Source of the DNA: Macrostomum lignano
Lineage: Eukaryota
Assembly (NCBI GenBank): GCA_002269645.1
Contig: NIVC01002987.1
Coordinates: 13,686-77,685 of the forward strand
Reading direction: 5' to 3'
DNA length: 64,000 nt
A model generated the notes under the pieces. That model did not search any database and was not told the DNA's origin. It saw only the letters and a program-made list of their open reading frames with translations. Within the stretch, counting starts at the first letter, position 1. Each line of letters starts with the position of its first letter. Of this stretch, positions 14,501 through 54,375 are shown one piece after another. Both the position numbers and the translations under genes were made by a program.

Positions 14501-15333
14501 CCAGTCATTGGGGTGTATTACCAGACTCTCCCAGTCATTGGGGTGTGTTTCCAGACTCTCCCAGTCATTGGTGTATTACCAGACTCTCCCAGTCATTGGG
14601 TTGTGTTTCCAGACTCTCCCAGTCATTGGGTTGTTGCCACTCACTCCCCATCCCAGTCATAGTGATATGACCGTCCGCCCCTACTCTTTGCTCCCTTCCC
14701 ACAGGCACGGATGCGGGCCTAGGCCAAATCCAGCTGGGCATACGGTACGACAGACGGCACCGGTTCCTGACTGTGGCGCTGCTGCAAGCGGCAAATCTGC
14801 AGCTGCCTCCAAACCAAAAGCCGCCGCAGCAGGTTCAAGCGCTGTTGCAGATCCTACCGCCGCAAGGTAGCCGCCACCAAGAGTTCAACGACACCTTCCA
14901 GACTCCGCCAGCTGAGTTCAATTCAGGTCAACCCAACTGGCGATACGCGTTCAAATTTGTGCAGTTCCCGGGCCTGCTAGCCAGCTGGCAGCTGCGGGTG
15001 GCGGTGCGGCTGGCAGCGGAAGATCAGGAAGACGGGACGCCGCGCTCACTTGTCCAGCAGCCGGCGCACCTCGGCGAGACTTGGCTCGATTTGGCAAAGT
15101 TTTCGCGACTGTCAGAGTCGTCATCAACTTCAACGCAAAACTCGTCGTCATCTTCGGCGACGGCGCCCGTCGAATCGCCGGCAAAGTGCGCAGACGATGG
15201 AGAGAAGCAGCGGCGACGGCAGCGACGGCAGCGGCGGCAGCGGAAGCTGCAACAGCAAGATGAAGCAGCAACTCTGGAGCAGGTGTTCTGGCAGCACCTG
15301 GAGCCTAGCAGGAGCTGCTGCGGTGGATTCTGA
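11593..15333 (+). CDS. Synaptotagmin-like gene: N-terminal TM helix, linker, one divergent C2 domain
   Basis: Exon 11593-11804 encodes a TM helix followed by CVCCWRRKRK, with donor ag|gtgact and an in-frame acceptor at 12015. A phase-1 donor at 12720 matches the acceptor at 14704. The last exon 14705-15333 encodes LGQIQLGIRYDRRHRFLTVALLQAANL...HLGETWLDL...VFWQHLEP (C2 fold). Linker exons are unresolved, and joining the TM exon to the C2 exon is inferred. Confidence 0.55.
12770..14640. repeat. Compound intronic minisatellite of three related 28-31-bp units
   Basis: cccagtcattggggtgtgtttccagactct, then ccctgcattcattggtgtagttccagactct, then variants of the first unit; shared core ttccagactctccc. 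Confidence 0.95.
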
Positions 15334-15812: not shown

Positions 15813-18800
15813 TCACGAATTTTTGGCTACGACTAAGTGCAGACTGCGCAGCATCTTCACTAGTTTGAAATCGTCATCGCTGAGCTGCGATGTGTCCACC
15901 TTGGCAACAGATGAGTTGTCCTTAGCAACTGGCGAGGCCTTAGCAACCGACGAGTCCTTAGCAACCGAAGAGTCCTTAGCAACCGACGAGTTTGTCTTAG
16001 CAATAGGCTTCTTTTCTTCAGTAGCTAACGTATTCTCCTTAGCAACCAACGAATTCTCCTGAGCTGGTCCCGTAGCAACCGGTGCCTCAATAACACTGGA
16101 ATTTTTATCTGGCGCTGGCAACTCGGCCCATACGCTGTCGTTCATAGGAGCGCATTCCAGAAACCGGGTCACTCGCTTCTTAGCATCCCCCTGCACAGCC
16201 GATTCGGGCCTGTACAGCCAGTAGAAACGGCACTGCAAGCTGGCCGACAGCTTGCGCACCGACGACAGGCAGCGGTGGAACTCGAAGAAGCCCAGGTCGT
16301 CGGGCGAGGGCGCAGACGGCGCCAGCAGCAGGTCAATCGGCAGGGCGGCACCGAGACGGTCGTCTGCCAGCAGTTCTACATCACCGAGATTGACAACTTG
16401 GCTGTCGTTGTTGATAGACGCTGTTGATTTTGCCGACAGACTAGAGGCCATCAGCAAAGTGGAGGTGAGCCCAGCTGCCTGCAGCAGCTTTAAGCTGAGC
16501 CCCTGCTGGTCGAACAGCACCAGGACGCGCAGCGGGCGAGTTGGGCTAGATTCGCGATCGAGCTGAGGTCTGAGGGGGTGTGGGTACACGGTGTGGCTGA
16601 GGCTTAAGCCCGTCGGTAACCAGTGGTCCGAACTGAAGTATCTGAGTTTGTCAACACTGATGGGGAATATTCCCACCTGAGGGATCAATACATCTACACG
16701 GATGGGAAAAATTCCCACCTGAGGGATCAATACATCTACACGGATGGGAAAAATTCCCACCTGAGGGATCAAGACATCTACACGGATGGGAAAAATTCCC
16801 ACCTGAGGGATCAAGACATCTACACGGATGGGAAAAATTCCCACCTGAGGGATCAATATATCAAGACTGATGGGGAATATTCCCACCTGAGGGATCAAGA
16901 CGTCAAGACTGATGGTGAATATTCCCACCTGAGGGATCAAGACGTCAAGACTGATGGTGAATATTCCCACCTGAGGGATCAAGACGTCAAGACTGATGGT
17001 GAATATTCCCACCTGAGGGATCAAGACGTCAAGACTGATGGTGAATATTCCCACCTGAGGGATCAATACATCTACACGGATGGGAAAAATTCCCACCTGA
17101 GGGATCAATATGTCAAGACTGATGGGGAATATTCCCACCTGAGGGATCAGTGTATCAACACGGATGGTGAATATTCCCACCTGAGGGATCAATATTTCAA
17201 GACTGATGGGGAATATTCCCACCTGAGGGATCAATATGTCAATACTGATGGGGAATATTCCCACCTGAGGAATCAATATCAACACGGATGGGAAATATTC
17301 CCACCTGAGAGATCAGTGTGTCAGGACTGATGGGGAACATTCCCACCTGAGGAATCAATACGTCAATACTAAATAGGATTGGGGGGATCATAACTGAATG
17401 ACGTCAGTAGCCTGGCCTGTCAGGACGCAGGCAATAACAAAACTGTTACTAAACACAGTGCAAAACAAATCTGATCTGTCCTTACCGACCAGCGGGTCGC
17501 AGCAGGCCCATCGGAGCGGACATGCACAGACAGCAAATCCAGTCAGTAGCGTCAGGCTCCAAGTAGGTGGCCAGGGCCCAGGCGGCCGGGCCGACAAGAA
17601 GGGTGAGACAGGCCTGCGGGAACACGGATACGGCTGATGACAGTCATCGGGATGTGGACAAGATCAGATAGGATGCAGACAAGATCAGAGAGGATGCGGA
17701 CAGGATCAGAGCGGATGCAGACAAGATCAGAGAGGATGCAGACAAGATCAGAGAGGATGCAGACAAGATCAGAGAGGATGCAGACAAGATCAGAGAGGAT
17801 GCAGACAAGATCAGAGAGGATGCGGACAAGATCAGAGAGGATGCGGACAAGATCAGATAATGTAGGCAAGATCTGAGAGGATGCGGACAAGATCAGAGAG
17901 GATGCAGACAAGATCAGAGAGGATGCGGACAGGATCAGAGTGGATGCGGACAAGATCAGAGAGGATGCGGACAGGATCAGAGTGGATGCGGACAAGATCA
18001 GAGAGGATGCGGACAAGATCAGAGAGGATGCGGACAAGATCAGAGAGGATGCAGACAAGATCAGATAGGATACGGACAAGATCAGAGTGGATGCGGACAA
18101 GATCAGAGAGGATGCGGACAGGATCAGAGTGGATGCGGACAAGATCAGAGAGGATACGGACAAGATCAGAGCGGATGCGGACAAGATCAGAGCGGATGCG
18201 GACAAGATCAGAGAGGATGCGGACAAGATCAGAGAGGATGCGGACAAGATCAGATAATGTAGGCAAGATCTGAGAGGATGCGGACAAGATCAGAGAGGAT
18301 GCAGACAAGATCAGAGAGGATGCGGACAGGATCAGAGTGGATGCGGACAGGATCAGAGAGGATGCGGACAGGATCAGAGTGGATGCGGACAGGATCAGAG
18401 TGGATGCGGACAGGATCAGAGTGGATGCGGACAAGATCAGAGAGGATGCGGACAAGGTCAGAGAGGATGCGGACAAGATCAGATAATGTAGGCAAGATCT
18501 GAGAGGATGCGGACAAGATCAGAGAGGATGCGGACAAGATCTGAGAGGATGCGGACAAGATCAGAGAGGATGCAGACAAGATCAGAGAGGATGCGGACAA
18601 GATCAGAGAGGATGCGGACAGGATCAGAGAGGATGCGGACAGGATCAGAGCGGATGCGGACAGGATCAGAGAGGATGCAGACAAGATCAGAGAGGATGCA
18701 GACAAGATCAGAGAGGATGCAGACAAGATCAGAGAGGATGCGGACAAGATCAGAGAGGATGCGGACAAGATCAGAGAGGATGCGGACAAGATCAGAGAGG

Positions 18801-20723
18801 ATGCGGACAAGATCAGAGGATTGCGGATGAAGCCATGAAGCCGGTAATACCTGGCAGAACAGTCGTTTGCAGCCTGTGCAAGTGGCCGCCTGCACGCCGC
18901 AGCGCATCGCGCACACAGAGCAGGCGCGGGCGCCCACGCCGATGACGGCAGCGGCAAGGGCGTCATTGACCCGGCGGCTGCAGGGCTGACACAGCTGGCC
19001 AGCGAATACGGGATGCTGGATAGCCGGGTCGCTGGCCGCCGAGCCGCCGCAGGCCAGACAGTAGTCAGGCTCGTTGATCCGGCTGCGCCTGTAGTTCCGC
19101 ATCAGCTGGTCTGTGATAGGACGCGAACCCGGTACCTCCAGGCAATCGTTATCGTGGCTACCGCCGCTGCTACTGCCACTGGGACCTCCGCTTCTGTCTT
19201 CTCCCTCTCTCTTCTCCTTTGTTCCGACAGCTTGGTTAGGCTTTTTGCAGCCCCGTCCCACTGTTGAAGCGGCGGTCGCGCTCTGCTCAAAGTCGGAGTC
19301 GCTGTCGACCGCGGCGGCGGCTGATGTGACTGGACGACTCTGTGCAGCTGGGATGAGATGGTGCATCGAAGCATTTCATTGCGCAGTGCGTGGCGTTACC
19401 TTCAAGACCACAGCATCAAACAGGACCCAGGGTCTTGCGCTATGGACAACCAAGGCAGAAGGACGCTGCACTGAAGCCAGCAGGTGTCCGAGCTGCGCTC
19501 ACAAGTTTATCAAGCTGTTTTTTTTAACTGCTGCCGGAGACCGGCAAGCAAGCAAAGTTGCGGCGAAATTGCAGCTGCTCCTGTCTCTGCAGTGTTTTGT
19601 CTGGACGGATTTGTCTTTGGTAAAAACCTGCTTAGTTTTATGTATGTAAAAAACCAAATCTCTGCAGTCGTTTAGAAAAGCTCTCCAATGATTTTTTAAA
19701 CTTTTTTCTCTTGAAAAAACTTGTGAGCGCACCTCGGAGAAAACACCTGCTGGCTTCATCTGCAATTCGGAAGTCCAGCAGGTGAGGTATTGGGAATTCA
19801 GTGCAGAAAAACTGAAAACTTCTTATCTCGCCAATGCATTCATATTCATACATGCGCAACTGCTGGCCAACCTGGCCGATCCGGCCACCGTAAATTGTGG
19901 TGGACCAGGTGGACCAAGTCGCATTTTTAATAAAAAAAGTAAGTCGTATGGCCAGTGTAAATCAGGGGGGGGTTGCGCATGTATGTTTATATAGATTTCT
20001 TTTTTATTATTTAATATTATTGATGGGTGTTAAAATTCTTTTCTTGTTTTAGAAGTAGACCATATCTGTAGACGAACATGGATTTCTTAAGACAGCAGCT
20101 AAACACTGACCAGGCGCGCCGCTTCTAACGTAGGAACGCCGGTGCCGCTCGCGCATGCTGTCCAGGCAGCGCTCGGCCCACTCGGACAGCCGACAACCGT
20201 CGCCGCCGTTCAACAGCGCCTGCTGGCCGGCCTCCAGCTCGGCTAGCGACTCTCGTAGCCGGCCAAGCGCAACCCGGCTGGTCAGGGAGCCGCGCGCCAA
20301 CAGCTCGTCTAGCAGGCGGACTAGGCCGCGTTGCTGCATCGAGCCGCTAGCGGGGGCGCCAGCACCAGCCGCAGGCAGATGGACCAGGGCTTTCTGGCTG
20401 CTCAGTGGCAGCAGGGATTTCTGAGCAACTTCGGACACTTTGCCTTCGGCTAGCCAAAGCAGCCAGCGCCAGCCTGGCCGAGCCGGGCGAAGGTGGCAGC
20501 GCCAGCCGGACACAACCATGCCGGGATAATGGCGCGCACCCCATGGCGCCCAGGCCAGAGCGCCGAAGTCTTCAACTAGCTCGCCCGACTGGGGGGCCAG
20601 CATGTTGTCAGCGGAGCTGACGGCGTTGCCCGATTCGTTGTCGGATGCGGATGAAGAGTCAGACGACTCATTGTAGTTGTTGCTGACAGGCCTGGGTCGC
20701 TTGGTTGCGCCGCGGGAGGGCAT
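15813..20723 (-). CDS. DNMT3-family protein: PWWP + ADD + catalytically degenerate methyltransferase-like domain, ~688 aa
   Basis: Exons 20723-20111, 19347-18851, 17613-17486 and 16641-15813 have GT/AG boundaries with matching phases (1, 0, 2) and total 2067 nt in one ORF. PWWP: WAPWGARHYPG, RWLLWLAEGK. ADD: CLACG..HPVFAGQLCQPC..CSVC..CTGCKRLFCQACLTLLVGP..WICCLC..GLLR. MTase-like: PLRVLVLFD, GDV, IDLLL, FFEFHRCL, FYWLY, VTRFLE. Confidence 0.9.
16645..17350. repeat. Intronic minisatellite, 42-bp unit
   Basis: gatcaagacgtcaagactgatggtgaatattcccacctgagg repeats filling intron 3 of the DNMT3-like gene. Confidence 0.95.
17655..18830. repeat. Intronic minisatellite, 21-bp unit
   Basis: gatcagagaggatgcggacaa repeats filling intron 2 of the DNMT3-like gene. 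Confidence 0.95.
19470..19762. mobile_element. MITE-like element, ~290 bp, in intron 1 of the DNMT3-like gene
   Basis: ~55-bp imperfect inverted ends (tgaagccagcaggtgtccgagctgcgctcacaagttt vs aaacttgtgagcgcacctcggagaaaacacctgctggcttca). Confidence 0.65.
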
Positions 20724-26200: not shown

Positions 26201-26302
26201 GCGCATACGCAGAGCCGGTAGACCTGCCCTGTTTTCCTGGTCTGGTCCGCCAGATACTTACCCATCCAGCCAGTGCCTGCCAATCCCCTATCTCGCTTTA
26301 CA

Positions 26303-29300
26303 ATGAGCATCCTGTGCCCATGCGCAGCCTCCAGCAGTGGTGCCTCATCTGGCGCCGAGGCCAAGTACTCGGTCGGCCGGGGCAACAAGCTGTCAGCCGA
26401 GCAGGTCAGTCGTCAAATCGATCGACAGTTGAAAGCCGACCGGGAGCTTCGACGCCACGAACGCCGCATCCTGTTGCTAGGCACTGCAGCTAGCGGTAAA
26501 AGTACATTTCTGAGATCGATGCGTATTATACACGAGGATCGATTCTCTGAGCAGGAGCTGCTCAGCTTCAAGTCAGTTATCTATTGCAATATTTGGCGCG
26601 GCCTGATGAAATTGCTGTACGTTAAAAAACGGCTTGGCATTCGCTGGGAGAATAATAAAACTGGCGTACCGGCTGTTAAAGCGCTGCTGGCTCTGGAGAA
26701 GGAAATTGGCCACTCGGCGCTCATGGCCTGCGGCCTGCGCGAGGATCAGTTCCTCAGGGCAGCGCCTTTTATTCAGGTATTTCTGTTTGCATGCTCTCCT
26801 GTGATTATTATCCATTAGGTCATTAGGGTTTTGTTAGCTTTCCCATGATGATTGTCCATTAGGCCATTAGCATTTTTCTTGCTTTAATTCCCATGATGAT
26901 TATCCATTAGGTCATTAGCGGTTTTCTTGCTTTAATTCCTATGGTGATTATCCATTAGGTCATTGAGGTTTTCTTTCTTTAATTCCCATGATGGTTATTC
27001 ATTAGGTCATTAGCGGTTTCTTGCTTTCCCATGATGATTATCCATTAGGTCATTAGCAGTTTTCTTGCTTTAATTCCCATGATGGTTATTCATTAGGTCA
27101 TTAGCGGTTTTCTTGCTTTCCCATGATGATTATCCATTAGGTCATTAGCGGTTTTCTTGCTTTCCCATGATGATTATCCATTAGGTCATTAGCGGTTTTC
27201 TTGCTTTCCCATGATGATTAACCATTAGGTCATTAGCGGTTTTCTTGCTTTAATCCCTATGGTGATTATCCATTAGGTCATTAGCGGTTTTCTTGCTTTC
27301 CCATGATGATTAACCATTAGATCATTAGCGGCTTTCTTGCTTTAATTCCCATGATGATTAACCATTAGGTCATTAGCGGTTTTCTTGCTTTAATTCCCAT
27401 GATGATTAACCATTAGGTCGTTAGCGGTTTTCTTGCTTTAATTCCAATGATGATTATCCATTAGGTCATTAGCGGTTTTCTTGCTTTCCCATGATGATTA
27501 TCCATTAGGTCATTAGCGGTTTTCTTGCTTTCCCATGATGATTATCTATTAGGTCATTAGCGGTTTTCTTGCTTTCCCATGATGATTAACCATTAGGTCA
27601 TTAGCAGTTTTCTTGCTTTAATTCCCATGATGATTATGCATTAGGTCATTAGCGGTTTTCTTGCTTTCCCAAGAGGACTATCTATTTAGTCATAGGGTTT
27701 CGACTACTAAAATATGATTTGTCATTACCTGGGTTGGGAGGGCCAGTGTCCTATAGCTGTTTGTGAATTCCAATCCGATTGCCACATGTACAGGAAACTT
27801 TTACTAATGAAATGTTATTGGGAAACTGGCTGCTATCTGACAAGCGGCGCACTAATCGCTTTCCGTATTTGATAGGAATGAGTCAATCAGGCCAGCAGCA
27901 GTCAGTGTCTTATGGGCAAGCATTAGCCAGAATATTTCTGCGCAGCGTTACACTTGGGGATGGGGTGCAAGGGCGAATGGCCATCCTGCTTTCCCCTCTT
28001 TCTCTCTCCCCCCTCTCTCCCACAGAAACTTTCCTGCATTTCTGGTCGGTCGGTCGTACTTCAATTTTCAAACTTTTCCGGAGCTCCCTCTTGTTTTTCC
28101 TATTCGAATGATCCGCATATCAGGCTTGGCTTGGCATATCATTACAGATTCAAATAGGCGTATGTATCTATACAGGCCATGCTGGTCTGTCCGCAGTGGC
28201 TTTGCATTCTCCCTCTTCCCACTGCTTCCCCCATTTCACCTCTGCTGGGCTTGCTACCGACAGGCCCATCTACGTCTAGTGTAGCCCTGTTGTGTTGTAT
28301 TTAATGGCGGATTCTTGTCGCGCCCCCTGACTTGGCTGCTGTAGATAATAGCTTTGCCTTTTGCTATTTTTTTGTCTGCAAATGCAGTGTGTAGTAGTCC
28401 ATATATACTACTGACAGTACTGTTATTTATGCTTTTCAATGAGCAGAATGAGTTTCGTAAGATTTTAATTTTGTGTTGTCTCTCAAATGTGTGTGTCAGC
28501 TGGCTACTGTGTTGTCTGTCAAATGTGTGTCAGCTGGCTACTGTGTTGTCTGTCAAATGTGTCAGCTGGCTACTGTGTTGTCTGTCAAATGTGTGTCAGT
28601 TGGCTACTGTGTTGTCTGTCAAATGTGTGTCAGCTGGCTACTGTGTTGTCTGTCAAATGTGTGTCAGTTGGCTACTGTGTTGTCTGTCAAATGTGTCAGC
28701 TGGCTACTGTGCCATCTCTGCATCTTCGCATGATTGAACATTGCCATGAGCTGGGAAGCTTATCACACCACACGCACAGGTTTGAATAGAATTAAAATGC
28801 TGTTTTTCACCTGCCCAGGTGCTCTGGTGCGACGCCGGAGTTCGTGAAGCATTCGAGCGCCGGCACAGCGTACCCGGCGACGAGGAGTTCAAAGATGTCG
28901 GAGAGAATCTGGATTACTATTTGAATAGGCTCAAATCTATCTCGGTTGTTAACTACAGGCCAACTGACGCGCACATATTGCATAGCAGGCGGTTTACTGA
29001 CTCGGTAAGGCAGTTTGTCTGGCTGCGATCTGCGAACTCTTTGCTGCCTACTTGCAGTAGTTTTCAAGTGATTACTGAGAGTCAGCCCCAAGCCCTACTG
29101 AGAGTCAGCCCCAAGCCCTACTGAGAGTCAGCCCCAAACCCTACTGAGAGTCAGCCGCAAACCCACTGAGAGTCAGCCGCAAACCCTACTGAGAGTCAGC
29201 CGCAAACCCTACTGAGAGTCGGCCGCAAACCTACTGAGAGTCAGCCGCAAGCCCTACTGAGAGTCAGCCCCAAACCCTACTGAGAGTCAGCCCCAAACCC

Positions 29301-30098
29301 TACTGAGAGTCAGCCGCAAACCTACTGAGAGTCAGCCGCAAGCCCTACTGAGAGTCAGCCCCAAACCCTACTGAGAGTCAGCCCCAAACCTACTGAGAGT
29401 CAGCCCCAAACCCTACTGAGAGTCAGCCCCAAGCCCTACTGAGAGTCAGCCCCAAACCCTACTGAGAGTCAGCCGCAAACCCTACTGAGAGTCAGCCCCA
29501 AACCCTACTGAGAGTCAGCCGCAAACTCCACCCGCAGGTATTCGAAAAGTGCCTGCTATACGAGGGCGTGCCCCTGCGCATTATCGACATTGGCGGGCAC
29601 ACTAACGAGCGCCGGAAATGGTCGAAAACGTTGCGCATATTCCAGGGCGAGCTGCAGTCGGTTATCTACATAATCGCCTGTTCAACATTCAACGAAACCT
29701 ACACCAAAGCCAGCGGCGAGCTCATCAACAAGCTCGACGAGAGTTTCCTCTGTCTGCGCCACCTTCTAGACGTGAAATCGGAGCTGTTCACCCGCGACAT
29801 GAACCTGATCGTGTTCTTCAACAAAGACGACCTGTTCTCTTACAAGATCGCCAGCCTTCGTGTCGATTATTCAAAGTTCGATTCGACCTTTCCAGCTGAT
29901 CGATTCGATCCGTTGGATCTCGGCCAGGTGCGCGAGCATCTGATCAGACGCCTGACCACTGTTGTGCCGCCTAATCGGCAGTTGCGCAGGTACACTCACT
30001 TCACCACCTCGATTGATCTCAGCAATGTCAGACGGGTGTTCCGCGACATCCGGGACACTGTTATGCTCAACTTTCTCAGAGAGGCCCTGCCGGCTTAG
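26303..30098 (+). CDS. Divergent heterotrimeric G-protein alpha subunit, closest in style to G12/13, ~406 aa
   Basis: Exons 26303-26776, 28819-29004 and 29538-30098, all phase 0 with canonical GT/AG. Motifs ILLLGTAASGKSTFLRSMRIIH, LWCDAGVREAFERR, DIGGHTNERRKW, FFNKDD, HFTTSID; N-terminal Cys pair MSILCPC. Confidence 0.92.
26810..27670. repeat. Intronic minisatellite, ~40-44-bp unit
   Basis: ttcccatgatgattatccattaggtcattagcggttttcttgct repeats. Confidence 0.95.
28495..28710. repeat. Intronic minisatellite, ~30-bp unit
   Basis: gtcagctggctactgtgttgtctgtcaaatgt repeats. Confidence 0.9.
29073..29525. repeat. Intronic minisatellite, 22-23-bp unit
   Basis: ctactgagagtcagccccaaacc repeats running up to the acceptor at 29537. 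Confidence 0.95.
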
Positions 30099-33310: not shown

Positions 33311-33692
33311 TGAACTGCATGTACCGACAATGAAGAAATTATCAAAAAATGTTATGTTCACACGGGCGCATATCATTTAGTATATTATAAAATATAAAAT
33401 GTACAATAAAAAAGATTGCTGTAAATCTTTCTCAATCAATAATAAGACTGTTAAAAATACGCACTTATCAGTTATATAACATGTTTAATACAATATGCTA
33501 CTGAAAGTAGCACGCTACAATACGAGTATTGTGGAAAACAAAGCAAGCGGCGCGCAATGATTACTCGTAGTTGATAAGCATAACTTAGCAGTGAATGACT
33601 TTTGACTGGCAAAATACAATTTGAGTTGCTTTCATAACCGGTAAGAACAGTACTTTGGCGGCTTGACAGCGTGTACATGACGAATGCTATGG

Positions 33693-33814
33693 CAGGGGTC
33701 GGCAAAATTTTTAACACACAAACCCAGAGCAGTCCGGATTGCTATTGTGAAGTTTCAAAGGACTCAAAAGCCGGATAGAGAGGCTTTTGCGGGCAAAGAG
33801 TTTGCCTACCCCTG
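33693..33814. mobile_element. Small hAT-like MITE, 122 bp
   Basis: TIRs caggggtcggcaaa ... tttgcctacccctg; no clear 8-bp target-site duplication. Confidence 0.55.
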
Positions 33815-33939
33815 AAGTAAGGCATTTTATTATTTTCTATTTAACAAATGCTTTTATAACCAACAGATACCGACATCTATACTACTAACTAAGTTAGTAG
33901 TGATGAACTGAACGCCTTTCAGGCTTTCAGCGGCTACAA

Positions 33940-36900
33940 TCAAGAAGTGTTTTCCTCGCGTTCTATAATCTCCATTAGATCGTCCCACAGTTCTTCTTCA
34001 GACGGTGCTGCTGCTACTGCTGCCGGTGGGAATGGCTCCTGTGTGAAAAAATCTTCCTCGAATGTTCGAGTTCTCCGAGCGTCCTTGCTTAGCAGCTCCG
34101 GACATTCCAATATCCCGACTGAGGAGGCGGCGCCAGCTGACATTGGCTGCACCAGAAACTGCTCTGGCTGCTGAGGATGAAGCTCGGGTTCTGCCGCAGT
34201 TGCAGCCCCACTATCAAAGATGTTGGGTCTTGAGTACACCTGCTGCTGCTGCTGATGGACCAGATTGATGGCCGGAGGTTGCACGCTTGGCCCCAGCCCA
34301 GCCTGAGGCTGGAGAACCGGCTGCCATTGGACCAGGTTGATAGCCGGGGGCTTCACGAGCTGAACAACCGGCTGCGTCTGCTGCCCAGATACGCCACTGG
34401 CGCCGGCTTGCTTGCGACGCGGTTCTGTAATTATTAATTATTTATTAATTACAGTTACAGGAGGGGGCCGTAGCCTTGTAGTATAGCGCGGCGCTCTAAT
34501 GTACCAGCGGCCCAGGCTCGATTCCAAGTTCAGTCGCATTAATTTAGGGAATCTCGGCTTGGCTCTGCTCGTGCAATTAACGCCCTTGAGGCCAACCCCC
34601 AAGGCACAGTGAAGTGTACATGCCTAACGATAAATAAAGTTAGGGCCGCTGTGGACTCCTGTGTGAGTGAGGATGGCGGAGGCCCAGTGTGAGAATGGCG
34701 GAGGCCCAGTGTGAGGATGGCGGAGGCCCAGTGTGAGGATGGCGGAGGCCCAGTGTAAGGATGGCAGAGGCCCAGTGTGAGGATGGCGGAGGCCCAGTGT
34801 AAGGATGGCAGAGGCCCAGTGTGAGGATGGCAGAGACCCAGTGTGAGGATGGCGGAGGCCCAGTGTAAGGATAGGCCCAGTGTGAGGATAGGCCCAGTGT
34901 GAGGATAGGCCCAGTGTGAGGATAGGCCCAGTGTGAGGATAGCAGAGTCTCAGTGTGAGGATGGCAGAGTCTCAGTGTGAGGATGGCGGAGGCCCAGTGT
35001 GACGATGGCGGAGGCCCAGTGTGAGGATGGCGGAGGCCCAGTGTAAGGATGGCAGAGTCTCAGTGTGAGGATGGCGGAGGCCCAGTGTGAGAATGGCGGA
35101 GGCCCAGTGTAAGGATGGCAGAGTCTCAGTGTAAGGATGGCGGAGGCCCAGTGTGAGGATGGCGGAGGCCCAGTGTGAGGATGGCGGAGGCCCAGTGTGA
35201 GGATGGCGAAAGCCCAGTGTGAGTACGGCGGAGGCTCAGTGTGAGTATGGCGGAGGCTCAGTGTGAGGATGGCGGAGGCTCAGTGTGAGGATGGCGGAGG
35301 CTCAGTGTGAGGATGGCGGAGGGCCAGTGTGAGGATGGCGGAGGCCCAGTGTGAGGATGACGGAGGCCCAGTGTGAGGATGGCGGAGGCCCAGTGTGAGG
35401 ATGACGGAGGCCCAGTGTGAGGATGACGGAGGCCCAGTGTGAGGATGGCGAAAGCCCAGTGTGAGTACGGCGGAGGCTCAGTGTGAGTATGGCGGAGGCT
35501 CAGTGTGAGGATGGCGGAGGCTCAGTGTGAGGATGGCGGAGGCTCAGTGTGAGGATGGCGGAGGGCCAGTGTGAGGATGGCGGAGGCCCAGTGTGAGGAT
35601 GACGGAGGCCCAGTGTGAGGATGGCGGAGGCCCAGTGTGAGGATGACGGAGGCCCAGTGTGAGGATGGCGGAGGCCCAGTGTGAGGATGCCGGAGGCCCA
35701 GTGTGAGGATGGCGGAGGCTCAGTGTGAGGATGGCGAAGGCCCAGTGTGAGGATGGCGCAGGCTCAGTGTGAGGATGGCGGAGGCCCAGTGTGAGGATGG
35801 CGGAGGCCCAGTGTGAGGATCTGAGAAAGTTTCCGAACAAACTGAGACATAGAGAAAGGGTTGGAATCAGGTTTCTCTTGTTTTCCTGCTAACACACGGA
35901 AGAGTTACCGCGATGCTCGAATGCAGAGGACGAGCTCGCACGGGGCAGACTGAGTTGAATTGGATTCTGCTGGCTATCGCAGCTGCCGCAGCCCCATCTG
36001 AAGCGGATTGGCTCGCTTTCTGCTGCTGGCTCACTTTGAGTTTCCATGGCAACAAAGAATCGGCAAGAGAAGCAATCCAAATTGCGGCTCTCAATGATGT
36101 CAATCAGTTCAGCCGGGATGCAACTTCCAACAGGTTCAATCTCCAGCAGGTGCTGAAATGATAAATATTGTACTCATTAACGATACGAGCTAAATAAAGC
36201 AACAGACATGCCAGACTGAAGAGAAGCTGTAAAAACTCGAACTCTCACCCCAGTGTGCCGTTTCACCGGGCAGTCAAACAGTCTGAAGTCGTCAATTTGA
36301 CAGGTGACCTTCAAATTTTTGCCGCCTAAAATATCGATTTTTATTTAATAGCGTTACTAATCTATAAAAAATTTATAGCGAAACTTTGTACTGCTCACCG
36401 CTTATCGCATCTCTCAGCAGGATGGCCAGATGGGTACTTCCAAATTTAGTACAGCAGGGCTCCGCCACAGCGGTCAGAATTTTCTCCACTGACACTCTCG
36501 GTGCTGAATTGGGGCGGGATTGGATGTGAGTGACAATGTGATTGCATGTGAGTGACAATGTGATTGCATGTGAGTGACAATGTGATTGCATGTGAGTGAC
36601 AATGTGATTGCATGTGAGTGACAATGTGATTGTATGTGAGTGACAATGTGATTGCATGTGAGTGACAATGTGATTGCATGTGAGTGACAATGTGATTGGA
36701 TGTGAGTGACAATGTGATTGGATGTGAGTGACAATGTGATTGGATGTGAGTGACAATGTGATTGCATGTGAGTGACAATGTGATTGGATGTGAGTGACAA
36801 AGTGATTGGATGTGAGTGACAAAGTGATTGGATGTGAGTGACAAAGTGATTGGATGTGAGTGACAAAGTGATTGGATGTGAGTGGCAAAGTGATTGGATG

Positions 36901-39433
36901 TGAGTGACAATGTGATTGCATGTGAGTGACAATGTGATTGCATGTGAGTGACAATGTGATTGCATGTGAGTGACAAAGTGATTGGATGTGAGTGACAAAG
37001 TGATTGGATGTGAGTGACAAAGTGATTGCATGTGAGTGACAAAGTGATTGCATGTGAGTGACAAAGTGATTGGATGAGTTACAATGATTGCATGTGAGTG
37101 ACAATGTGATTGGATGTGAGTGACAATGTGATTGGATGTGAGTGACAATGTGATTGGATGTGAGTGACAATGTGATTGGATGTGAGTGACAATGTGATTG
37201 GATGTGAGTGACAATGTGATTGGATGTGAGAGACAATGTGATTGGATGTGAGTGACAATGATTGGATGTGAGTGACAATGCTTGGATGTGAGTGACAATG
37301 CTTGGATGTGAGTGACAATGCTTGGATGTGAGTGACAATGATTGGATGTGAGTGACAATGTGATTGGATGTGAGCGAAAATGTGATTGGATGCGAGCGAT
37401 AATGGGATTGGATGCAAGTGACAATGATTGGACGAGTAAAGCGAAGTGATTAGACGAGCGACAAAGTGATTGACGAATGGCATAAAGTGATTAGACGAGT
37501 GACATAAAGTGATTAGACGAGTGACATAAAGTGATTAGATGAGTGACATAAAGTGATTAGACGAGTGACATGAAGTGATTAGACGAGTGACATGAAGTGA
37601 TTAGACGAGTGACATGAAGTGATTAGACGAGTGACATGAAGTGATTAGACGAGTGACATGAAGTGATTAGACGAGTGACAAAGTGACAGCCGCTTACAAA
37701 CGGACTGGGAGGCGGCGGCGCCGTGGGCCGGTCCGACGCCCTGGAATTCCGTTGTCGATGCCTCAGTGCGGTTATCTACCTCGGGTAGGTAGAAATTGAT
37801 TCGAAGTTTTTTTACTGTTTTTGCCGAAAAATTTACGCCGGGATCTGAAATTCAAAAATAAAAACTCGTGCTTCTTAAAACACAGGAGAAACGAGCAAAG
37901 GAAATTCACCTGACATACCTGCAATATTTATATTGAAGTTTTCAAGAGTCGCCTTTTTACTAGCCATCGCCTCTCTCCACTTACTCTGCTGACAGGACCG
38001 CACCATCACGCGATCCAGACTGCAACGGGATATGACAGTGAAAAATAAAAATGTCTGTCTGATCTAATCCTCTTAACACCAATCCAGATCCTCCTCCTCC
38101 CCACTAATCCATATCCCCCTCCCCACTAATCCAGATCCCCCTCCCCACTAATCCATATCCCCCTCCCCACCAATCCAGATCCCCTCCCCACCAATCCAGA
38201 TCCCCCTCCCCATCAATCCAGATCCCCCTCCCCATCAATCCAGACCCCCTTTCCCTCCAATCCAGACCCCCTTCCCCACCAATCCATACCCCCTTCCCCA
38301 TCAATCCAGATCCCCCTCCCCACCAATCCGGATCCTCCTCCCCACCAATCCAGATTCTCCTCCCCACCAATCCAGATCCTCCTCCCCACCAATCCAGATC
38401 CTCCTCCCCACCAATCCAGATCCCCCTCCCCACCAATCCAGATCCCCTTTCCCTCCAATCCAGATCCCCTTTCCCTCCAATCCAGATCCCCTTCCCCACC
38501 AATCCAGATCCCCCCTCCCCATCAATCCAGATCCCCGTCCTCACCAATCCAGACCCCCCTCCCCATCAATCCAGATCCCCTTCCTCACCAATCCAGATCC
38601 CTCCCCATCAATCCAGACCCCCCTCCCCATCAATCCAGATCCCCTTCCTTACCAATCCAGATCCCTCCCCATCAATCCAGATCCCCTTCCCCACCAATCC
38701 AGCTCCCCTTCCCCACCAATCCAGATCCCCCCTCCCCACCAATCCAGCTCCCCTTCCCCACCAATCCAGATCCCCTTCCCCACCAATCCAGATCCCCCTC
38801 CCCATCAATCCATATCCCCCTCCCCATCAATCCAGATTCCCTTCCCCATCAATCCAGATCCCACTCCCAACCAATCCAGATCCCCCTCCCCATTAATCCA
38901 GATCCCCTTCCCCACCAATCCAGATCCCCCTCCCCACCAATCCAGACCCCCCTCCCCATCAATCCGGATCCCCTTTCTCACCAATCCAGATCCCCCTCCC
39001 CATCAATCCAGATCCCCTTCCTCACCAATCCAGACCCCCTTTCCCTCCAATCCAGATCTCATTCCTCGACCATTTAGATGCCACAGCCAGCTTACAGCTT
39101 TTAAACAAGCCAAGTGATTCATGCTCACCGGACCAGCGCTTTCTCTTCGCCAGCAGGAATAGTAACAACCTTCTTGAATATGCCATCAGTGCAGCTGTTG
39201 CCATCCAATTGATACGGGTGATTCTCGCCATCTACACTAACCAAAACAGCTATAACTGTGCACTGAAGTAAGCTTGATGGACCTGCGACCTCGCCTAATT
39301 TTCGCCGAACAGCCAATGTCACGCACTGACCTTCCAATTGGCCTCGCAAGTACAGAGTCTCATTTAAATTTCGAGTGCGGGCATTGCCAAGTGGACAAGT
39401 GGGTGCAGGCTGCACTTCAATGCGCATATACAT
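33940..39433 (-). CDS. Highly divergent Rel-homology-domain transcription factor (Rel/NF-kB-like), ~466 aa
   Basis: Exons 39433-39129, 38019-37919, 37844-37698, 36503-36385, 36152-35909 and 34424-33940 have consistent phases (2, 1, 1, 0, 1) and total 1401 nt. Motifs: MRIEVQP, ARTRNLNE (cf. RelA MRFRYKCE), VLVSVDGENHPYQLDGNSCTDGIF (cf. [26 protein letters not shown]), FYLPE, IPT end SEPIRFRW (cf. SEPMEFQY), basic PRRK, Q/P-rich acidic tail. The exon 4 donor is weak, so that junction is uncertain. Confidence 0.75.
34463..34665 (+). mobile_element. tRNA-derived SINE, copy 1
   Basis: B-box ggctcgattcc; ~200 bp closely matching 54163-54375. Confidence 0.75.
34665..35820. repeat. Intronic minisatellite, ~22-bp unit
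   Basis: gtgtgaggatggcggaggccca repeats in Rel-like intron 5. Confidence 0.95.
36520..37680. repeat. Intronic minisatellite, ~22-bp unit
   Basis: gatgtgagtgacaatgtgattg repeats in Rel-like intron 3, grading into gacgagtgacatgaagtgatta. Confidence 0.95.
38080..39055. repeat. Intronic C-rich minisatellite, ~22-bp unit
   Basis: ccaccaatccagatccccctcc repeats in Rel-like intron 1. Confidence 0.95.
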
Positions 39434-40669
39434 TTATGTAGGTAGCATGCAGTCAATAGAAATTTTTTTTAAAGTCCATTGGTTAAAATATTATTTTCAA
39501 TGCTAAAATTGATATACATTGAATATGCCATAATGTAAAATTACTTCTATATTTATATAGCCTAGGCCTATGGTTGTCATCAATAACATTTATAATCATC
39601 TATGTGCAACCTCCTCAATTTAGTTTTAAAACGTGACTTATTTATTTGGTCTATCTGCAACTTGGTAGTTGGTTCTAATAATGGTATAGTTGTGACTTTC
39701 TTTTGCTTTCTTTCTCTTTTGTTGGTTTTACCATTTATTGTTTTATTTTCTTCCTTGCTTCTTTTTTCCTGCTTACATTGATCATTTATTGTTCTCTTTA
39801 CTTATTATTATTATTATTGTACTTATTTTTATTATTGATCTACTCTAGAAAGGGTTTCTTATACAAAAAATGATGGCATATTTACTATGACATACTTAAA
39901 ATGATTTTTAAATAAAACATTGGCATGCAGAGTTGGAATGCACAAAAAATGGCACCAAGTTCAAGTTTGGCATAAATGGATATATCTAAATTTTGATTAA
40001 GTAAAACCTTTTTATAGAGTTTTGCTGTAGCAGTGGATATGGCTATAGGAAGTTATTACAGATATGGTTATAGGAACACATATTTCCTATATCTAGTTCT
40101 TGTATTTAGTAATACCACTCAACTGAGACTTAAGACAATTGAAGCTGTTGATTTAATAGGGGTAAAGATGAATGAATGTTCAAAGTGAGGGAACTTTTAA
40201 GTCCTTGGAATTTAGGACTCAAGCATCAACATAGATTTTCAATGCCATGTCCACATTGTGGTTGAGTGATAGGGGCTAAAGTTAAGATAATTTTGTCACT
40301 TTCAAAGGCGACCTAAGACCCTACATGGATTTGGGGGCTTAAGCAATAGAGAGTTTTGATGCCATGTGCACATTCTAGTTGGGTGGTGGAGACTAAAGTT
40401 AATATAAATATTTTCAATTTCAAGGGGAACTCTTAAGTTCCTAGAATTAAAGACTAGGATTGGGTTAGGGTAGTAAGGGCTAAATTTAGGATGAATTTTT
40501 TCATTTTTAGTATGAAATGTCAATGTCAAGGCTTATGGGGGGATTGCTAAGATATAAAGGCTGAGGTCAGAAGCTACATATAGTTTATTCAAAAAAATTT
40601 TACATTCTTTGTTGGCTGGCTCCTAACAGGGAATGCTGATAAAAGAAGCAAGTCAAAAATAAAAGATAA

Positions 40670-41270
40670 GTCATGTCAAACATAAAAGAAGCATCATGTC
40701 AAACATAAATAAGCATCATGTCAAACATAAAGAAGCATCATGTCAAACATAAAGAAGCATCATGTCAAACATAAAGAAGCATCATGTCAAACATAAATAA
40801 GCATCATGTCAAACATAAAAAAGAATCATGTCAAACATAAAGAAGCATCATGTCAAACATAAATAAGCATCATGTCAAACATAAAAAAGAATCATGTCAA
40901 ACATAAAGAAGCATCATGTCAAACATAAATAAGCATCATGTCAAACATAAAGAAGCATCATGTCAAACATAAAGAAGCATCATGTCAAACATAAAGAAGC
41001 ATCATGTCAAACATAAATAAGCATCATGTCAAACATAAAGAAGCATCATGTCAAACATAAAGAAGCATCATGTCAAACATAAAGAAGCATCATGTCAAAC
41101 ATAAAGAAGCATCATGTCAAACATAAAGAAGCATCATGTCAAACATAAAGAAGCATCATGTCAAACATAAAGAAGCATCATGTCAAACATAAAGAAGCAT
41201 CATGTCAAACATAAAGAAGCATCATGTCAAACATAAAGAAGTATCATGTCAAATGTAAAGAAGCATCATG
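40670..41270. repeat. Minisatellite, 22-bp unit
   Basis: catgtcaaacataaagaagcat repeats, CpG-free, inside the AT-rich block. Confidence 0.95.
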
Positions 41271-46757: not shown

Positions 46758-48107
46758 ATGCCGTACTACAACTGGGTCTACTTTGTCCAGCTGGCAATCG
46801 TTGCTGGCGTGATGGTCATTCTGTTCCTGCTGGTTTTTTCCCACACAATGGCCATCATTTTCGCAAGATCCCACTTCTACAAGAAGGTAGCTTTCGAGCC
46901 GGCTGCTGTCGAGGCCGGCCTGCCCGGCGTGTCCATCATCAAGCCGCTGGTTGGCATAGACAAGAATGTGTACAGCAACCTGGAGACCTACTTCAGGCTG
47001 GACTATCCCCGTTACGAGCTGCTGTTCTGCCTGGAGAGCGCGGACGATGCCGTCACTATGGTGGTGGACACACTGATGCAAAAGTACCCCAAAGTAGACA
47101 CCCGGGTATTTACGTCACCTGTGCGTCACAACGTCAATCCCAAGATCAACAACATGATGCAGGGCTACTCGGCAGCAAAGTACGACCTCGTGATGGTCTC
47201 AGACAGCGGCGTTAAAATGCGACCAGAGGCGCTGATGGACATGGTTTGGTGCATGTCGCAAAAGGATATCGGAATTGTCCACCAGATGCCATTCATTGAG
47301 CAGCGACCTGGCTTTCGCAACTTGGCCCATTCCACGCATTTTGGCTGCACGCATGCCAAGTTTTACATTAGCGCCCACTGTCTGGGGATCAACTGCTGCA
47401 CAGGAATGTCCTGCCTGCTGCGCAAGCCCGTCATCGACAAGAAGCCGGGCGGTCTCGCCTACTTCGGCCGCTACCTAGCCGAGGATTTCTTCGTGGCGCA
47501 GCACTTCATTGAAAACGGTTACAAGATGACGCTGTCGCACTATCCCGCGCTGCAGGACGGCAGTGGAGAAGTTAGAGGTCTGCGTAGGCGTCTGATACGC
47601 TGGCTGCAGCTGCGCGTCGCAATGGTGCCACAGCTGGTGAGTAAATGCGGCGCTCAATGACAGCTAATAACCATCCAGTTTTAGTGTATTGGGATTTCAA
47701 AAGTTTACGCAAGTTCCCTAATAAATACTGCTCTCCAGGTGGTACTCGAGATGCTTGCCGAGTGCCTCGTGTCCGGCGCCATGGGTGCCTGGGCGTTCGC
47801 TTTCCTGCTTCCGAGCCTGGTCAATCCAATTGTGTACTTTCTAACCCACTGCCTGATCTGGTTGCTGGCCGACTATACCCTGCTGTGCAGCTGCCTGGAC
47901 CCGGCCGAGCCGCTCATGTTCAGCCGGCTGGCGTTCATGTTCACGTGGCTATTCTGGATCGGAACCCAGCCGATCACGGTGGTTCGATCGCTCTTCCACT
48001 CAGAGATTGTCTGGCGGGACAAGCGCTTCCGGCTGCAGTGGGGCGGCAACACGGTGGAGCTGCCAGGCCTGCCTGTCAACCTCAGCGCTGCCAAGCAGGC
48101 AGTTTGA
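46758..48107 (+). CDS. UGCG: Ceramide glucosyltransferase (glucosylceramide synthase), 415 aa
   Basis: Exons 46758-47636 and 47739-48107 (gtgagt...ctctccag, phase 0). N-terminal TM, GVSIIKPLVGID.NVYSNLETYF, NPKINNMMQGY, SDSG, LAEDFF, RRLIRWLQLR, VWRDKRFRL. Confidence 0.95.
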
Positions 48108-51489: not shown

Positions 51490-53470
51490 TCCGAAAGTAC
51501 TTCACATCATAAACCCGAAATATCCCAAACCCGAAATACCACAAACCCGAAATACCACAAACCCGAAATATCACAAACCCGAAATATCCCAAACCCGAAA
51601 TATCACACACCCGAAATATCCCAAACCCGAAATATCACAAACTCGAAATATCACAAACCCGAAATATCACAAACCAAAAGTATCACAAACCCGAAATATT
51701 ACAAACCCGAAATACCACAAACCCGAAATATCACAAACCCGAAATACCACAAACCCGAAATACCACAAACCCGAAATATCACAAACCCGAAATATCAGAA
51801 ACCCGAAATATCCCAAACCCGAAATATCACACACCCGAAATATCCCAAACCCGAAATATCACAAACTCGAAATATCACAAACCCGAAATATCACAAACCA
51901 AAAGTATCACAAACCCGAAATATCACAAACCCGAAATATCACAAACCCGAAATATCACAAGCCAGAAGTATCACAAACCCGAAATATCCCAAACCCGAAA
52001 TATCACACACCCGAAATATCACAAACTCGAAATATCACAAACCCGAAATATCACAAACCAAAAGTATCACAAACCCGAAATATCACAAACCCGAAATATC
52101 ACAAACCCGAAATATCACAAACACGAAATACCACAAACCCGAAATACCACAAACCCGAAATATCACAAACCCGAAATTTCACAAACCCGAAATATCCCAA
52201 ACCCGAAATATCACACACCCGAAATATCCCAAACCCGAAATATCACAAACTCGAAATATCACAAACCCGAAATATCACAAACCAAAAGTATCACAAACCC
52301 GAAATACCACAAACCCGAAATATCACAAACCCGAAATATCACAAACCCGAAATATCCCAAACCCGAAATATCACACACCCGAAATATCCCAAACCCGAAA
52401 TATCACAAACTCGAAATATCACAAACCCGAAATATCACAAACCAAAAGTATCACAAACCCGAAATATCACAAACCCGAAATATCACAAACCCGAAATATC
52501 ACAAGCCAGAAGTATCACAAACCCGAAATATCCCAAACCCGAAATATCACACACCCGAAATATCACAAACTCGAAATATCACAAACCCGAAATATCACAA
52601 ACCAAAAGTATCACAAACCCGAAATATCACAAACCCGAAATATCACAAACCCGAAATATCACAAACCCGAAATACCACAAACCCGAAATACCACAAACCC
52701 GAAATATCACAAACCCGAAATTTCACAAACCCGAAATATCCCAAACCCGAAATATCACACACCCGAAATATCCCAAACCCGAAATATCACAAACTCGAAA
52801 TATCACAAACCCGAAATATCACAAACCAAAAGTATCACAAACCCGAAATATCACAAACCCGAAATATCACAAACCCGAAATATCACAAGCCAGAAGTATC
52901 ACAAACCCGAAATATCCCAAACCCGAAATATCACACACCCGAAATATCACAAACCCGAAATATCACAAACCCGAAATACCACAAACCCGAAATACCACAA
53001 ACCCGAAATATCACAAACCCGAAATTTCACAAACCCGAAATATCCCAAACCCGAAATATCACAAACCCGAAATTTCACAAACCCGAAATATCCCAAACCC
53101 GAAATATCCCAAACCCGAAATATCACACACCCGAAATATCCCAAACCCGAAATATCACAAACCCGAAATATCACAAACCAAAAGTATCACAAACCCGAAA
53201 TATCACAAACCCGAAATATCACAAACCCGAAATATCACAAGCCAGAAGTATCACAAACCCGAAATATCCCAAACCCGAAATATCACACACCCGAAATATC
53301 ACAAACCCGAAATATCACAAACCCGAAATATCACAAGCCTGAAATATCACAAACCCGAAATATCACAAACCCGAAATATCACAAACCCGAAATACCACAA
53401 ACCCGAAATATCACAAGCCTGAAATATCACAAACCCGAAATATCACAAACCCGAAATACCACAAACCCCA
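51490..53470. repeat. 16-bp satellite array with higher-order pattern
   Basis: aaacccgaaatatcac repeated over about 2 kb with recurring variant blocks. Confidence 0.95.
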
Positions 53471-54162
53471 AAAGTTCTAGCAACGTCCAACGGTACTTTT
53501 TGTTTTCGGAGTTGTGATATTTCGGGTTTTTATGCCCCCCCCCCGTATCAATCCACATAACCTTCTAGCTTCAGAAACATTCGTGTTTTTATAAAAAACC
53601 CCATCATATCAGAAACTACGCTCTCATTAGGCTTCAATGGACCGCCCATTGACCGCCCCAAGCTATTCCCGTTCCAGCGGACGCACCGGCGTGAGGTTGC
53701 ACTTTGACGGTCTCCGGCTTGACAGCTTGGAGCCGGGCGGCGAGAAGAACTGATGACCTTCAGCTGTGGTGCCGCCTGCGGCAAGACTTCCGCCGCTACC
53801 GCTGCACCCGCTGCCGCTGTGAGCCCCGGCGAATGATGAAGCTACTGAGGAGCTGCCAGCTGCCGATTGCGGAGACGTGTTGACGCTGTGCCGCCTTGGC
53901 TGCACCGCCGTCGGCAGGGAAAGCGTGAAGCTGCGGTTGGCGTCTTCCTGGAAATGTTGCCATTTTGAGATACGTTTGTAAAAAATGCTCACGTGTCTTA
54001 TTGACAATACTAGTCAAAAATAACATTGAAAGTGGTGTAGGTTAAATATCCCGGGAAAAATAATACACGTAGATAAACGCAGTTTAAACAGTTATGTTAG
54101 GAGCAGAGCTAGTATTAAATTAACGAAATACTGATAATATGGTCCAATCTGCATTGGAACTG

Positions 54163-54375
54163 TGCCAGGGTGGTTTAGCGCGGCGCTCTGACGTGCCAGC
54201 GGCCCAGGCTCGATTCCAAGTGCAGTCGCATTAATTTTTTGAGGCTAAATTGGAATCTTGGCTTGGCTCTGCTCGTGCAATTAACGGCCTTGAGGGCCAA
54301 CCATCAAGGCACAGTAAAGTGTACATGCCTAACGATAAATAAAGTTAGGGCCGCTGTACACTCCTGTGTGAGTGT
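54163..54375 (+). mobile_element. tRNA-derived SINE, copy 2
   Basis: tggtttagcgcgg...ggctcgattcc boxes; matches 34463-34665. Confidence 0.75.

Follow-up and report, generated by a model that had tools for sequence, protein, structure and literature searches.

Whether transcription factors of the Rel/NF-κB type were lost from the flatworms, or have only diverged beyond the reach of sequence searches, is a question that bears on innate immunity, regeneration and host-parasite signalling. It is raised here by a minus-strand gene of Macrostomum lignano spanning positions 39433-33940 of the window, a stretch of 64,000 nucleotides from contig NIVC01002987.1 (assembly GCA_002269645.1) to which the coordinates below refer unless another locus is named. 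The initial annotation of this DNA had described a cryptic Rel/NF-κB-like gene hidden among intronic minisatellites, and had set it against a general absence of NF-κB reported for planarians and parasitic flatworms. The premise that flatworms simply lack NF-κB is dated (PMC13563047, PMC6043800). A 2024 survey did not find p50/p105 in Platyhelminthes (PMC11432056). In the planarian Schmidtea mediterranea, seven long-branch Rel homology domain (RHD) transcription factors were described in 2026, together with a well-conserved NFAT5 and no clear NF-κB, and RNA interference (RNAi) of the RHD gene most similar to Drosophila Relish caused rapid lethality (PMC13563047). An NF-κB-like gene of planarian intestinal phagocytes, with an RNAi phenotype, is cited in a passage of a 2018 review (PMC6043800). 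Divergent flatworm RHD genes are thus already in print, and what is new here is a macrostomid example and an argument from gene structure.

The product of the gene is very likely a highly divergent descendant of the RHD family, which has the architecture of the class II Rel proteins and lies beyond detection by domain libraries. Homology with the RHD family as such is close to secure, and the Rel branch is a likely placement when weighed against the NFAT branch. A function like that of NF-κB, with binding to κB sites, control by IκB and a role in immunity, appears doubtful.

Gene structure and existing annotation

The gene is intact and protein-coding. Seven coding exons, with a GT donor and an AG acceptor at every intron, join in frame to encode a protein of 487 residues. 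The start codon is the ATG at 39433, directly preceded by an in-frame TAA, or the ATG at 39427, from which the protein would have 485 residues; the stop codon occupies positions 33942-33940. The open reading frames and splice sites confirm the location and strand previously proposed, and the spliced product contains all the peptides that had been quoted from it, namely MRIEVQP, HPYQLDGNSCTDG, SEPIRFRW, PRRK, EEELWDDLMEII and the Q/P-rich tail. The exon count had to be corrected from six to seven. A further intron within exon 1 was considered and rejected. The sole GT..AG pair available takes out 68 nt and loses the frame, so that exon 1 is one continuous open reading frame.

The spliced product is identical, residue for residue, to GenBank entry PAA54016.1 (BOX15_Mlig005807g1, UniProt A0A267DXY1), which begins with the residues MY ahead of the product of the second ATG and is otherwise the same sequence. 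GenBank thus already contains the gene in exactly this form, and UniProt automatically names A0A267DXY1 'RHD domain-containing protein'; the gene is neither cryptic nor hidden, as had been supposed. In a word-indexed search of 5.8 billion clustered proteins, its close relatives are four entries, all from Macrostomum lignano, in agreement with the suspected flatworm origin of the DNA. No paper was found on this locus or on RHD genes of Macrostomum.

Intron positions and phases

The strongest evidence is the correspondence of the introns with those of known RHD genes, which is regarded as establishing homology with the RHD family. Reference introns were mapped from proteins and genomic loci for one mammalian RELA, for the NFAT5 of Capitella and for one fish NFAT5, and 18 sequences were aligned with three modes of MAFFT, blind to the introns. 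The RHD introns of RELA comprise one in phase 0 (TIK/ING), one in phase 2 (CIH-S-FQNLGI) and four in phase 1 (NPFQ-V-PIEE, IFDN-R-APN, KVQK-E-DIEV and LPDT-D-DRH). Each of the six Macrostomum introns has a counterpart of the same phase in an RHD gene, five in mammalian RELA and one in NFAT5.

Intron 1 (38020..39128, phase 2, ALV-R-LDRVMV) shares its alignment column and its phase with the introns CIH-S-FQNLGI of RELA and DMT-A-VDCVGIL of NFAT5. The counterpart of intron 2 (37845..37918, 74 nt, phase 1, NINIA-D-PGV) is NPFQ-V-PIEE of RELA, which is present in neither of the NFAT5 genes examined. Intron 3 (36504..37697, phase 1, SQSV-S-PRV) has counterparts in both RELA (IFDN-R-APN) and NFAT5 (PILC-T-QPAG). 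Intron 4 (36326..36398, 73 nt, phase 1, DAIS-G-GKNLKV) lies in the column of KVQK-E-DIEV of RELA, a position where NFAT5 has no intron. Intron 5 (36153..36248, 96 nt, phase 0, RHTG/HLLEIE) shares column and phase with an intron of NFAT5 (FHQ/NHLIV in the fish, FQT/THLIC in Capitella) that is lacking in RELA. Intron 6 (34425..35908, phase 1, FEHR-E-PRRK) likely corresponds to the phase-1 intron situated just after the RHD in RELA (LPDT-D-DRH) and NFAT5 (TPDS-A-DNS), with an offset of 7-9 residues at a place where the flatworm sequence contains additional residues. All six introns are on the minus strand, like the exons given below.

Introns 1, 4 and 5 are located no more than two columns away from a same-phase reference intron in all three MAFFT modes. 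In the E-INS-i mode, five of the six introns lie no more than one residue from a RELA or NFAT5 intron with the same phase, and across all modes this distance is at most five residues. With random placement of six introns, the probability of such a match is P < 1e-5 (E-INS-i, tolerance 1) or about 1e-4 (all modes, tolerance 5). Between shared introns, the exons of the Macrostomum gene measure 101, 147 and 105 nt, compared with 92, 132 and 105 nt in RELA. The intron evidence is independent both of residue similarity and of the Rel-profile score presented below.

Domain architecture and motifs

The E-INS-i alignment keeps the flatworm protein and the RHDs colinear throughout, with about 20% identity in forced alignments. 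The predicted domains of the protein are, in order, an N-terminal RHD domain that begins at residue 2, a helical insert of Rel length and a second domain of IPT type. Next come a basic cluster, at the position where Rel proteins have their nuclear localization signal (NLS), and a tail rich in Q and P whose end is acidic-hydrophobic. The anchors HP..L.G..C.DG, (V/L)R(L/I)xF, HLLEIE/AIVF and SEP..F.[YW] are found in this order in nearly all MAFFT runs.

Exon 1 (39129..39433) covers residues 1-101, ends in phase 2 and specifies the N-terminal domain up to its middle. It comprises the segment YMRIEVQP, aligned with YVEIIEQP in RelA and LRIEVQP in NFAT1, a candidate DNA-recognition loop and HPYQLDGNSCTDG (39182..39220, residues 72-84), the best-conserved Rel/NF-κB motif (PH-x-H-x-L-V-G-K-x-C-x-D-G). 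The latter is placed in the same column by every MAFFT mode tried, is also found by hhalign and hmmsearch, and is devoid of the four-residue 'FYQ' insertion of NFAT proteins. Exon 2 (37919..38019) encodes the Rel-type helical insert, and exon 3 (37698..37844) the linker and the end of the N-terminal domain, where VKKLRINF is the counterpart of NAVRLCF.

The first strands of the IPT, or dimerisation, domain are encoded by exon 4 (36399..36503), with FGSTHLAILL facing LGGDEIFLL, and its middle part by exon 5 (36249..36325, 77 nt). Exon 6 (35909..36152, 244 nt) provides the remainder, including HLLEIEP (VAIVFRTP in RelA, NHLIVTVP in NFAT5), SEPIRFRW (SEPMEFQY) and lineage-specific insertions. Exon 7, which includes the stop codon (33940..34424), covers the protein from the basic cluster through the Q/P-rich tail to the acidic-hydrophobic C-terminus. 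The basic cluster PRRK (34411..34422, residues 328-331) occupies the position of the Rel NLS, EPRRKQ being aligned with EEKRKR of RelA. Its position in the alignment makes it a putative NLS, and with three basic residues only it is a weak fit to the classical consensus. The acidic-hydrophobic C-terminal motif EEELWDDLMEII (33964..33999) is a candidate transactivation element, by its analogy to the acidic TA1 at the C-terminus of RelA.

Profile searches and structure prediction

A hidden Markov model (HMM) built from 14 RHDs of the Rel/NF-κB class matched the protein with 6.4 bits (E 2.7e-4 at Z=1). The match is colinear, weak and local, residues 68-136 being aligned with HMM positions 67-132, and its score was reached by one of 5000 shuffled versions of the protein. 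As about four profile variants were tried, the significance is corrected to near 1e-3, and the match is suggestive, short of decisive. An HMM of 22 NFAT-class RHDs found no match at any threshold, and an HMM dominated by NFAT5 gave nothing relevant. When homologues were sought with a mixed RHD profile, nearly all of the hits were vertebrate p65 and none were flatworm RHDs. Together with the correspondence of the introns, the weak similarity to the Rel profile upholds the view of the initial annotation that the gene is a highly divergent RHD homologue.

Several results weigh against the reading of the product as an RHD protein of Rel architecture, and they include two checks that had been suggested beforehand, with Pfam and with Foldseek. 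When the product and its four relatives were scanned against Pfam-A with hmmscan at E ≤ 10, RHD_DNA_bind (PF00554) and RHD_dimer (PF16179) were both unmatched. No match was found in the PDB with phmmer, and an exhaustive phmmer search of 1.84 billion representative proteins, with the database paralogue P0002 as the query, returned the M. lignano gene itself only. With hhalign, only the HPYQLDGNSCTDG stretch was aligned to a five-sequence RHD profile (P 0.016, probability about 3% or below), and local alignments to the Rel-only and NFAT-only alignments were not significant (probability <3%).

Two structures were predicted with AlphaFold, with the protein P0003 as the first row of the input in both cases. 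With four near-identical paralogues only, the model was all-β, with a mean predicted local distance difference test score (pLDDT) of 32, and the Foldseek search on this family-free model retrieved only generic immunoglobulin/fibronectin type III (Ig/FN3) sandwiches (E > 0.006). The second prediction was given a 24-row alignment with p65, Dorsal and NFAT5 proteins. Residues 46-160 were then modelled with pLDDT 70-92, including a helix in the insert (residues 113-128, pLDDT 80-90), and Foldseek retrieved chains of p65, c-Rel, p50, p52, RelB and NFAT with E from 3.8e-6, for p65, to 1e-3. Since the fold comes from the supplied alignment and the procedure is circular, this family-informed model serves only as a consistency check. 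The IPT domain stayed below pLDDT 50 even with the family alignment, in which its first strands were misaligned by MAFFT. These strands shift among MAFFT runs, as does the recognition loop.

The hallmark loop RFRYxCEG of Rel proteins is not conserved. In the E-INS-i alignment, the candidate recognition loop R-T-R-N-L-N-E (39359..39379, residues 19-25) faces R33-F-R35-Y36-K-C38-E39 of RelA, and in an alternative register the loop would be L-R-G-Q-L-E-G (residues 29-35). The pLDDT of the loop, below 50 in both AlphaFold models, does not decide between the two registers. With RTRNLNET, the two Arg and the Glu of RFRYKCEG are kept and the Tyr and Gly are lost; with LRGQLEG, one Arg, the Glu and the Gly are kept and the first Arg and the Tyr are lost. 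The Tyr is missing in both registers. The basic residues through which RelA contacts the DNA backbone (K122/K123, K218/K221 and R246) are aligned by E-INS-i with non-basic residues of the flatworm protein. If the protein binds DNA at all, its specificity probably differs from canonical κB sites. To these points are added the phase-0 intron, which is common to NFAT5 and not to RELA, and the nucleotide substitutions between paralogues, which are considered next.

Paralogues and constraint

Two further loci of the same assembly have the same exon structure, namely Mlig005807g2 (L001) and Mlig020545g1 (L003, NIVC01002988.1). The flanking DNA of Mlig005807g2 is about 96% identical to that of the window. 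The protein encoded by Mlig020545g1 is 88% identical to the window product. Compared with window positions 33343-40033, this locus shows 97.5-99.7% identity from 600 bp upstream to exon 6, introns included, and 86% identity in exon 7, and is unalignable downstream. This abrupt boundary suggests a gene conversion tract or a duplication breakpoint within intron 6 or exon 7. The window copy and this 88% identical paralogue end in the same 13 residues, DLMEIIEREENTS, and the surrounding tail varies.

The comparison with the 88% identical paralogue yields a ratio of non-synonymous to synonymous rates (dN/dS) of about 0.5-0.6; in the RHD part, with 4 synonymous and 8 non-synonymous substitutions, it is about 0.6. 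Purifying selection is without support, because this value rests on very few changes. In Mlig005807g2, a one-base shift beside a C-run in the last exon (L001 14514-14845; window about 34340-34350) replaces the Q/P-rich tail by 85 unrelated residues in GenBank PAA84984.1. It could be a homopolymer assembly error or a real disabling mutation.

These observations bear on the foremost alternative, which is rather unlikely: that the gene descends from an RHD gene and no longer encodes a DNA-binding activator like NF-κB, being either a duplicate with a new role, as in protein binding or as a dominant-negative partner, or a gene drifting to loss. The loss in the alignment of the recognition-loop Tyr and of several basic DNA contacts is in keeping with it. 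So are the dN/dS value, the frameshift of the last exon in one of the three copies, the existence of automatic gene models with skipped exons, and the fact that no orthologue outside M. lignano is detectable among the 5.8 billion clustered proteins and the 1.84 billion representatives. However, the frame is open through all seven exons in the window copy and in Mlig020545g1, and through exon 6 in Mlig005807g2. The splice sites are canonical for six of six introns in all three loci, and DLMEIIEREENTS is kept in a paralogue in which identity over the rest of the tail is down to 86%. Moreover, the substitutions in the RHD part are too few for a test of selection, and the frameshift is located in a C-run, where it may be an assembly error.

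Assignment to the Rel branch

The features that point to the Rel branch, in addition to the exclusive match of the Rel profile and the missing FYQ insertion, concern the insert, the introns and the N-terminus. The segment from GI to VRLxF counts 42 residues, versus 39 in RelA and 25 in NFAT5, and contains an intron of RELA type in phase 1. Introns 2 and 4 are Rel-only among the genes mapped. The RHD starts from residue 2, without the N-terminal regulatory region of NFAT type. Neither ankyrin repeats nor any other Pfam domain was detected in the product. The p105/Relish class is excluded, since ankyrin repeats and a glycine-rich region are both missing. Together with the Rel-pointing features, this leads to the RelA/c-Rel/Dorsal layout. 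The same layout had been recognised by the initial annotation from the N-terminal RHD, the basic cluster at the NLS position, the Q/P-rich tail with its acidic-hydrophobic end and the lack of ankyrin repeats.

Membership of the NFAT/NFAT5 branch, as a divergent form, is improbable. It would account for the N-terminal RIEVQP, which is presumably identical to the sequence of human NFAT1, and for the phase-0 intron RHTG/HLLEIE, which is common to the annelid and fish NFAT5 genes and not to RELA; HLLEIEP moreover resembles NHLIVTVP. The Macrostomum gene agrees with NFAT5/TonEBP in its RIEVQP-like start and in the position and phase of four introns, one of them the phase-0 intron that precedes the HL(I/L)-x-(V/I) strand. 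However, introns 2 and 4 are not found in NFAT5, and the NFAT5-specific phase-1 intron (QENNA-D-DNSW) is not found in the Macrostomum gene. The NFAT-only HMM is unmatched, whereas the Rel-only HMM gives E 2.7e-4. The loop of NFAT type (RAHYETEG/RARYLTEG), the FYQ insertion after the conserved His and the short insert, by which an NFAT-type RHD is recognised, are all absent from the Macrostomum protein. It has instead a Rel-length insert with the RELA-type intron, and an intron 4 in common with RELA only. The phase-0 intron may have been present in the common ancestor of the family.

In addition, M. lignano possesses a separate NFAT5-like protein, known as a fragment (P0238, UniProt A0A1I8IZ70) encoded outside the window. 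In the part that matches human NFAT5 the identity is 50%, and the fragment contains VKPHGYYQACRVSGK and DCVGILKLRNADVE. The genome with the very divergent Rel-type gene thus has a well-conserved NFAT5 branch. As the initial annotation had noted, the start of the protein resembles NFAT and its core resembles Rel. Both resemblances hold, but the first probably does not extend to NFAT membership, and the gene is not an ordinary NFAT orthologue.

That the RHD likeness is a coincidence, in an unrelated β-sandwich protein such as an arrestin-like one, is very improbable: the unmatched Pfam RHD families, hhalign probabilities below 3%, the generic Ig/FN3-like sandwiches obtained with unbiased AlphaFold and Foldseek, and the UniProt name given to models that skip exon 4 would fit, but five of the six introns match introns of the RHD family in both position and phase (P about 1e-4 or lower), independently of a Rel-profile score reached by 1 in 5000 shuffles, the motifs are colinear across the whole domain and Pfam Arrestin_C is unmatched as well. 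The UniProt names are in conflict, since A0A1I8G4H4 and A0A1I8J951, in which exon 4 is skipped, are called 'Arrestin_C domain-containing protein', and A0A267DXY1 and others 'RHD domain-containing protein'. Pfam at E ≤ 10 backs neither name, and the Arrestin_C identity of the two models was rejected for want of any support from it.

Repeats and neighbouring genes

Minisatellites with a period of 22 bp fill introns 1, 3 and 6. Five arrays of this period are located in the gene or just upstream: 34667-35820 in intron 6, the adjoining 36518-37426 and 37425-37680 in intron 3, 38077-39058 in intron 1, and 40671-41270. Their consensus units are unrelated. At least 15 other arrays, with periods of 16-48 bp, are present in the window. 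The length of the array-bearing introns varies over the three loci (1109/1088/1151 nt for intron 1, 1194/2007/1172 nt for intron 3 and 1484/475/967 nt for intron 6). The short introns are nearly constant, with 74, 73-75 and 96 nt.

Intron 6 also contains one of the two window copies of a dispersed repeat of about 200 bp (34478-34670 and 54170-54374), which are 87% identical. By eye, the head of this repeat is tRNA-like, as in short interspersed nuclear elements (SINEs); ARAGORN and Rfam detected no tRNA or other RNA in the intron 6 copy. A 16-bp satellite with about 123 copies of the unit ATCACAAACCCGAAAT extends over 51506-53472 and is the cause of the extreme GC and AT skew at this place. 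Many of the long open reading frames listed for the window (12795-14620, 16651-17370, 17650-18818 and 36373-37424) are translations of tandem repeats and not genes.

The exons of a Gα gene (26273-30098, plus strand), the introns of which contain minisatellites, are convergent with the RHD gene. The window further contains a single-exon gene for an inward-rectifier K+ channel (9733-10863, minus strand; IRK and IRK_C, E 1e-49 to 1e-56) and a family-21 glycosyltransferase of the ceramide glucosyltransferase type (46758-47660, plus strand). Of two other open reading frames, one has an ADD_DNMT3-like zinc finger (18479-19366, minus strand) and one is weakly GCV_H-like (2979-3548, plus strand).

Discussion

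The Macrostomum protein is best compared with the class II Rel proteins, RelA/c-Rel and Dorsal/Dif. In common with them it has an RHD near the N-terminus, the HP-x-x-L-x-G-x-x-C-x-D-G motif, a helical insert of Rel length, an IPT domain closing with SEP..F.[YW], a basic cluster right after the RHD and a C-terminal tail without ankyrin repeats and with an acidic-hydrophobic end. It differs from them by the replacement of RFRYxCEG with RTRNLNET or LRGQLEG, by the loss of most of the basic contacts to the DNA backbone, by insertions of 4-25 residues in loops and after the last strand, and by the lack of any Pfam match. At the gene level, five introns are shared with mammalian RELA in position and phase, and one exon has 105 nt in both. 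The differences are the extra phase-0 intron of the Macrostomum gene and its lack of the two N-terminal RELA introns. The class I NF-κB proteins (p105/p100, Relish) share the core motifs of the RHD, but the Macrostomum protein has neither their ankyrin repeats and glycine-rich region nor the long insert of p50 type.

The Schmidtea RHD factors are, by their published description, also long-branch flatworm RHDs with no clear assignment to NF-κB, and their canonical partners are uncertain (PMC13563047). Any orthology of the present gene with them would lie below sequence detection, as phmmer matched nothing outside M. lignano among the 1.84 billion representatives.

The protein would be expected to dimerise through its IPT domain, enter the nucleus by means of the basic cluster, bind DNA through loops of the N-terminal domain and activate transcription through its C-terminal motif. 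These four activities are putative, as are the fold of the second domain and a role in immunity. As to the origin of the gene, it is tentatively proposed, as a reading that is plausible and short of probable, to be a macrostomid survivor of an ancestral bilaterian Rel gene, which would have kept an ancestral set of introns, the union of those now divided between RELA and NFAT5, while its sequence drifted beyond the reach of profiles.

The impact of the finding is limited, because the gene was already annotated and automatically labelled as an RHD gene and because divergent planarian RHD genes have been published. It nevertheless offers a practical route, since the positions and phases of introns can establish membership of a family, and hint at the subfamily, when profiles and structure prediction fail. 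Macrostomum is situated near the base of the flatworm tree, and the presence of a Rel-type gene there argues for divergence and not for an early loss of the family. If the gene is indeed a survivor of the ancestral Rel gene, Rel-class factors would not have been lost at the base of the Platyhelminthes, and intron mapping could tie the long-branch RHD genes of planarians and parasites to Rel, NF-κB or NFAT.

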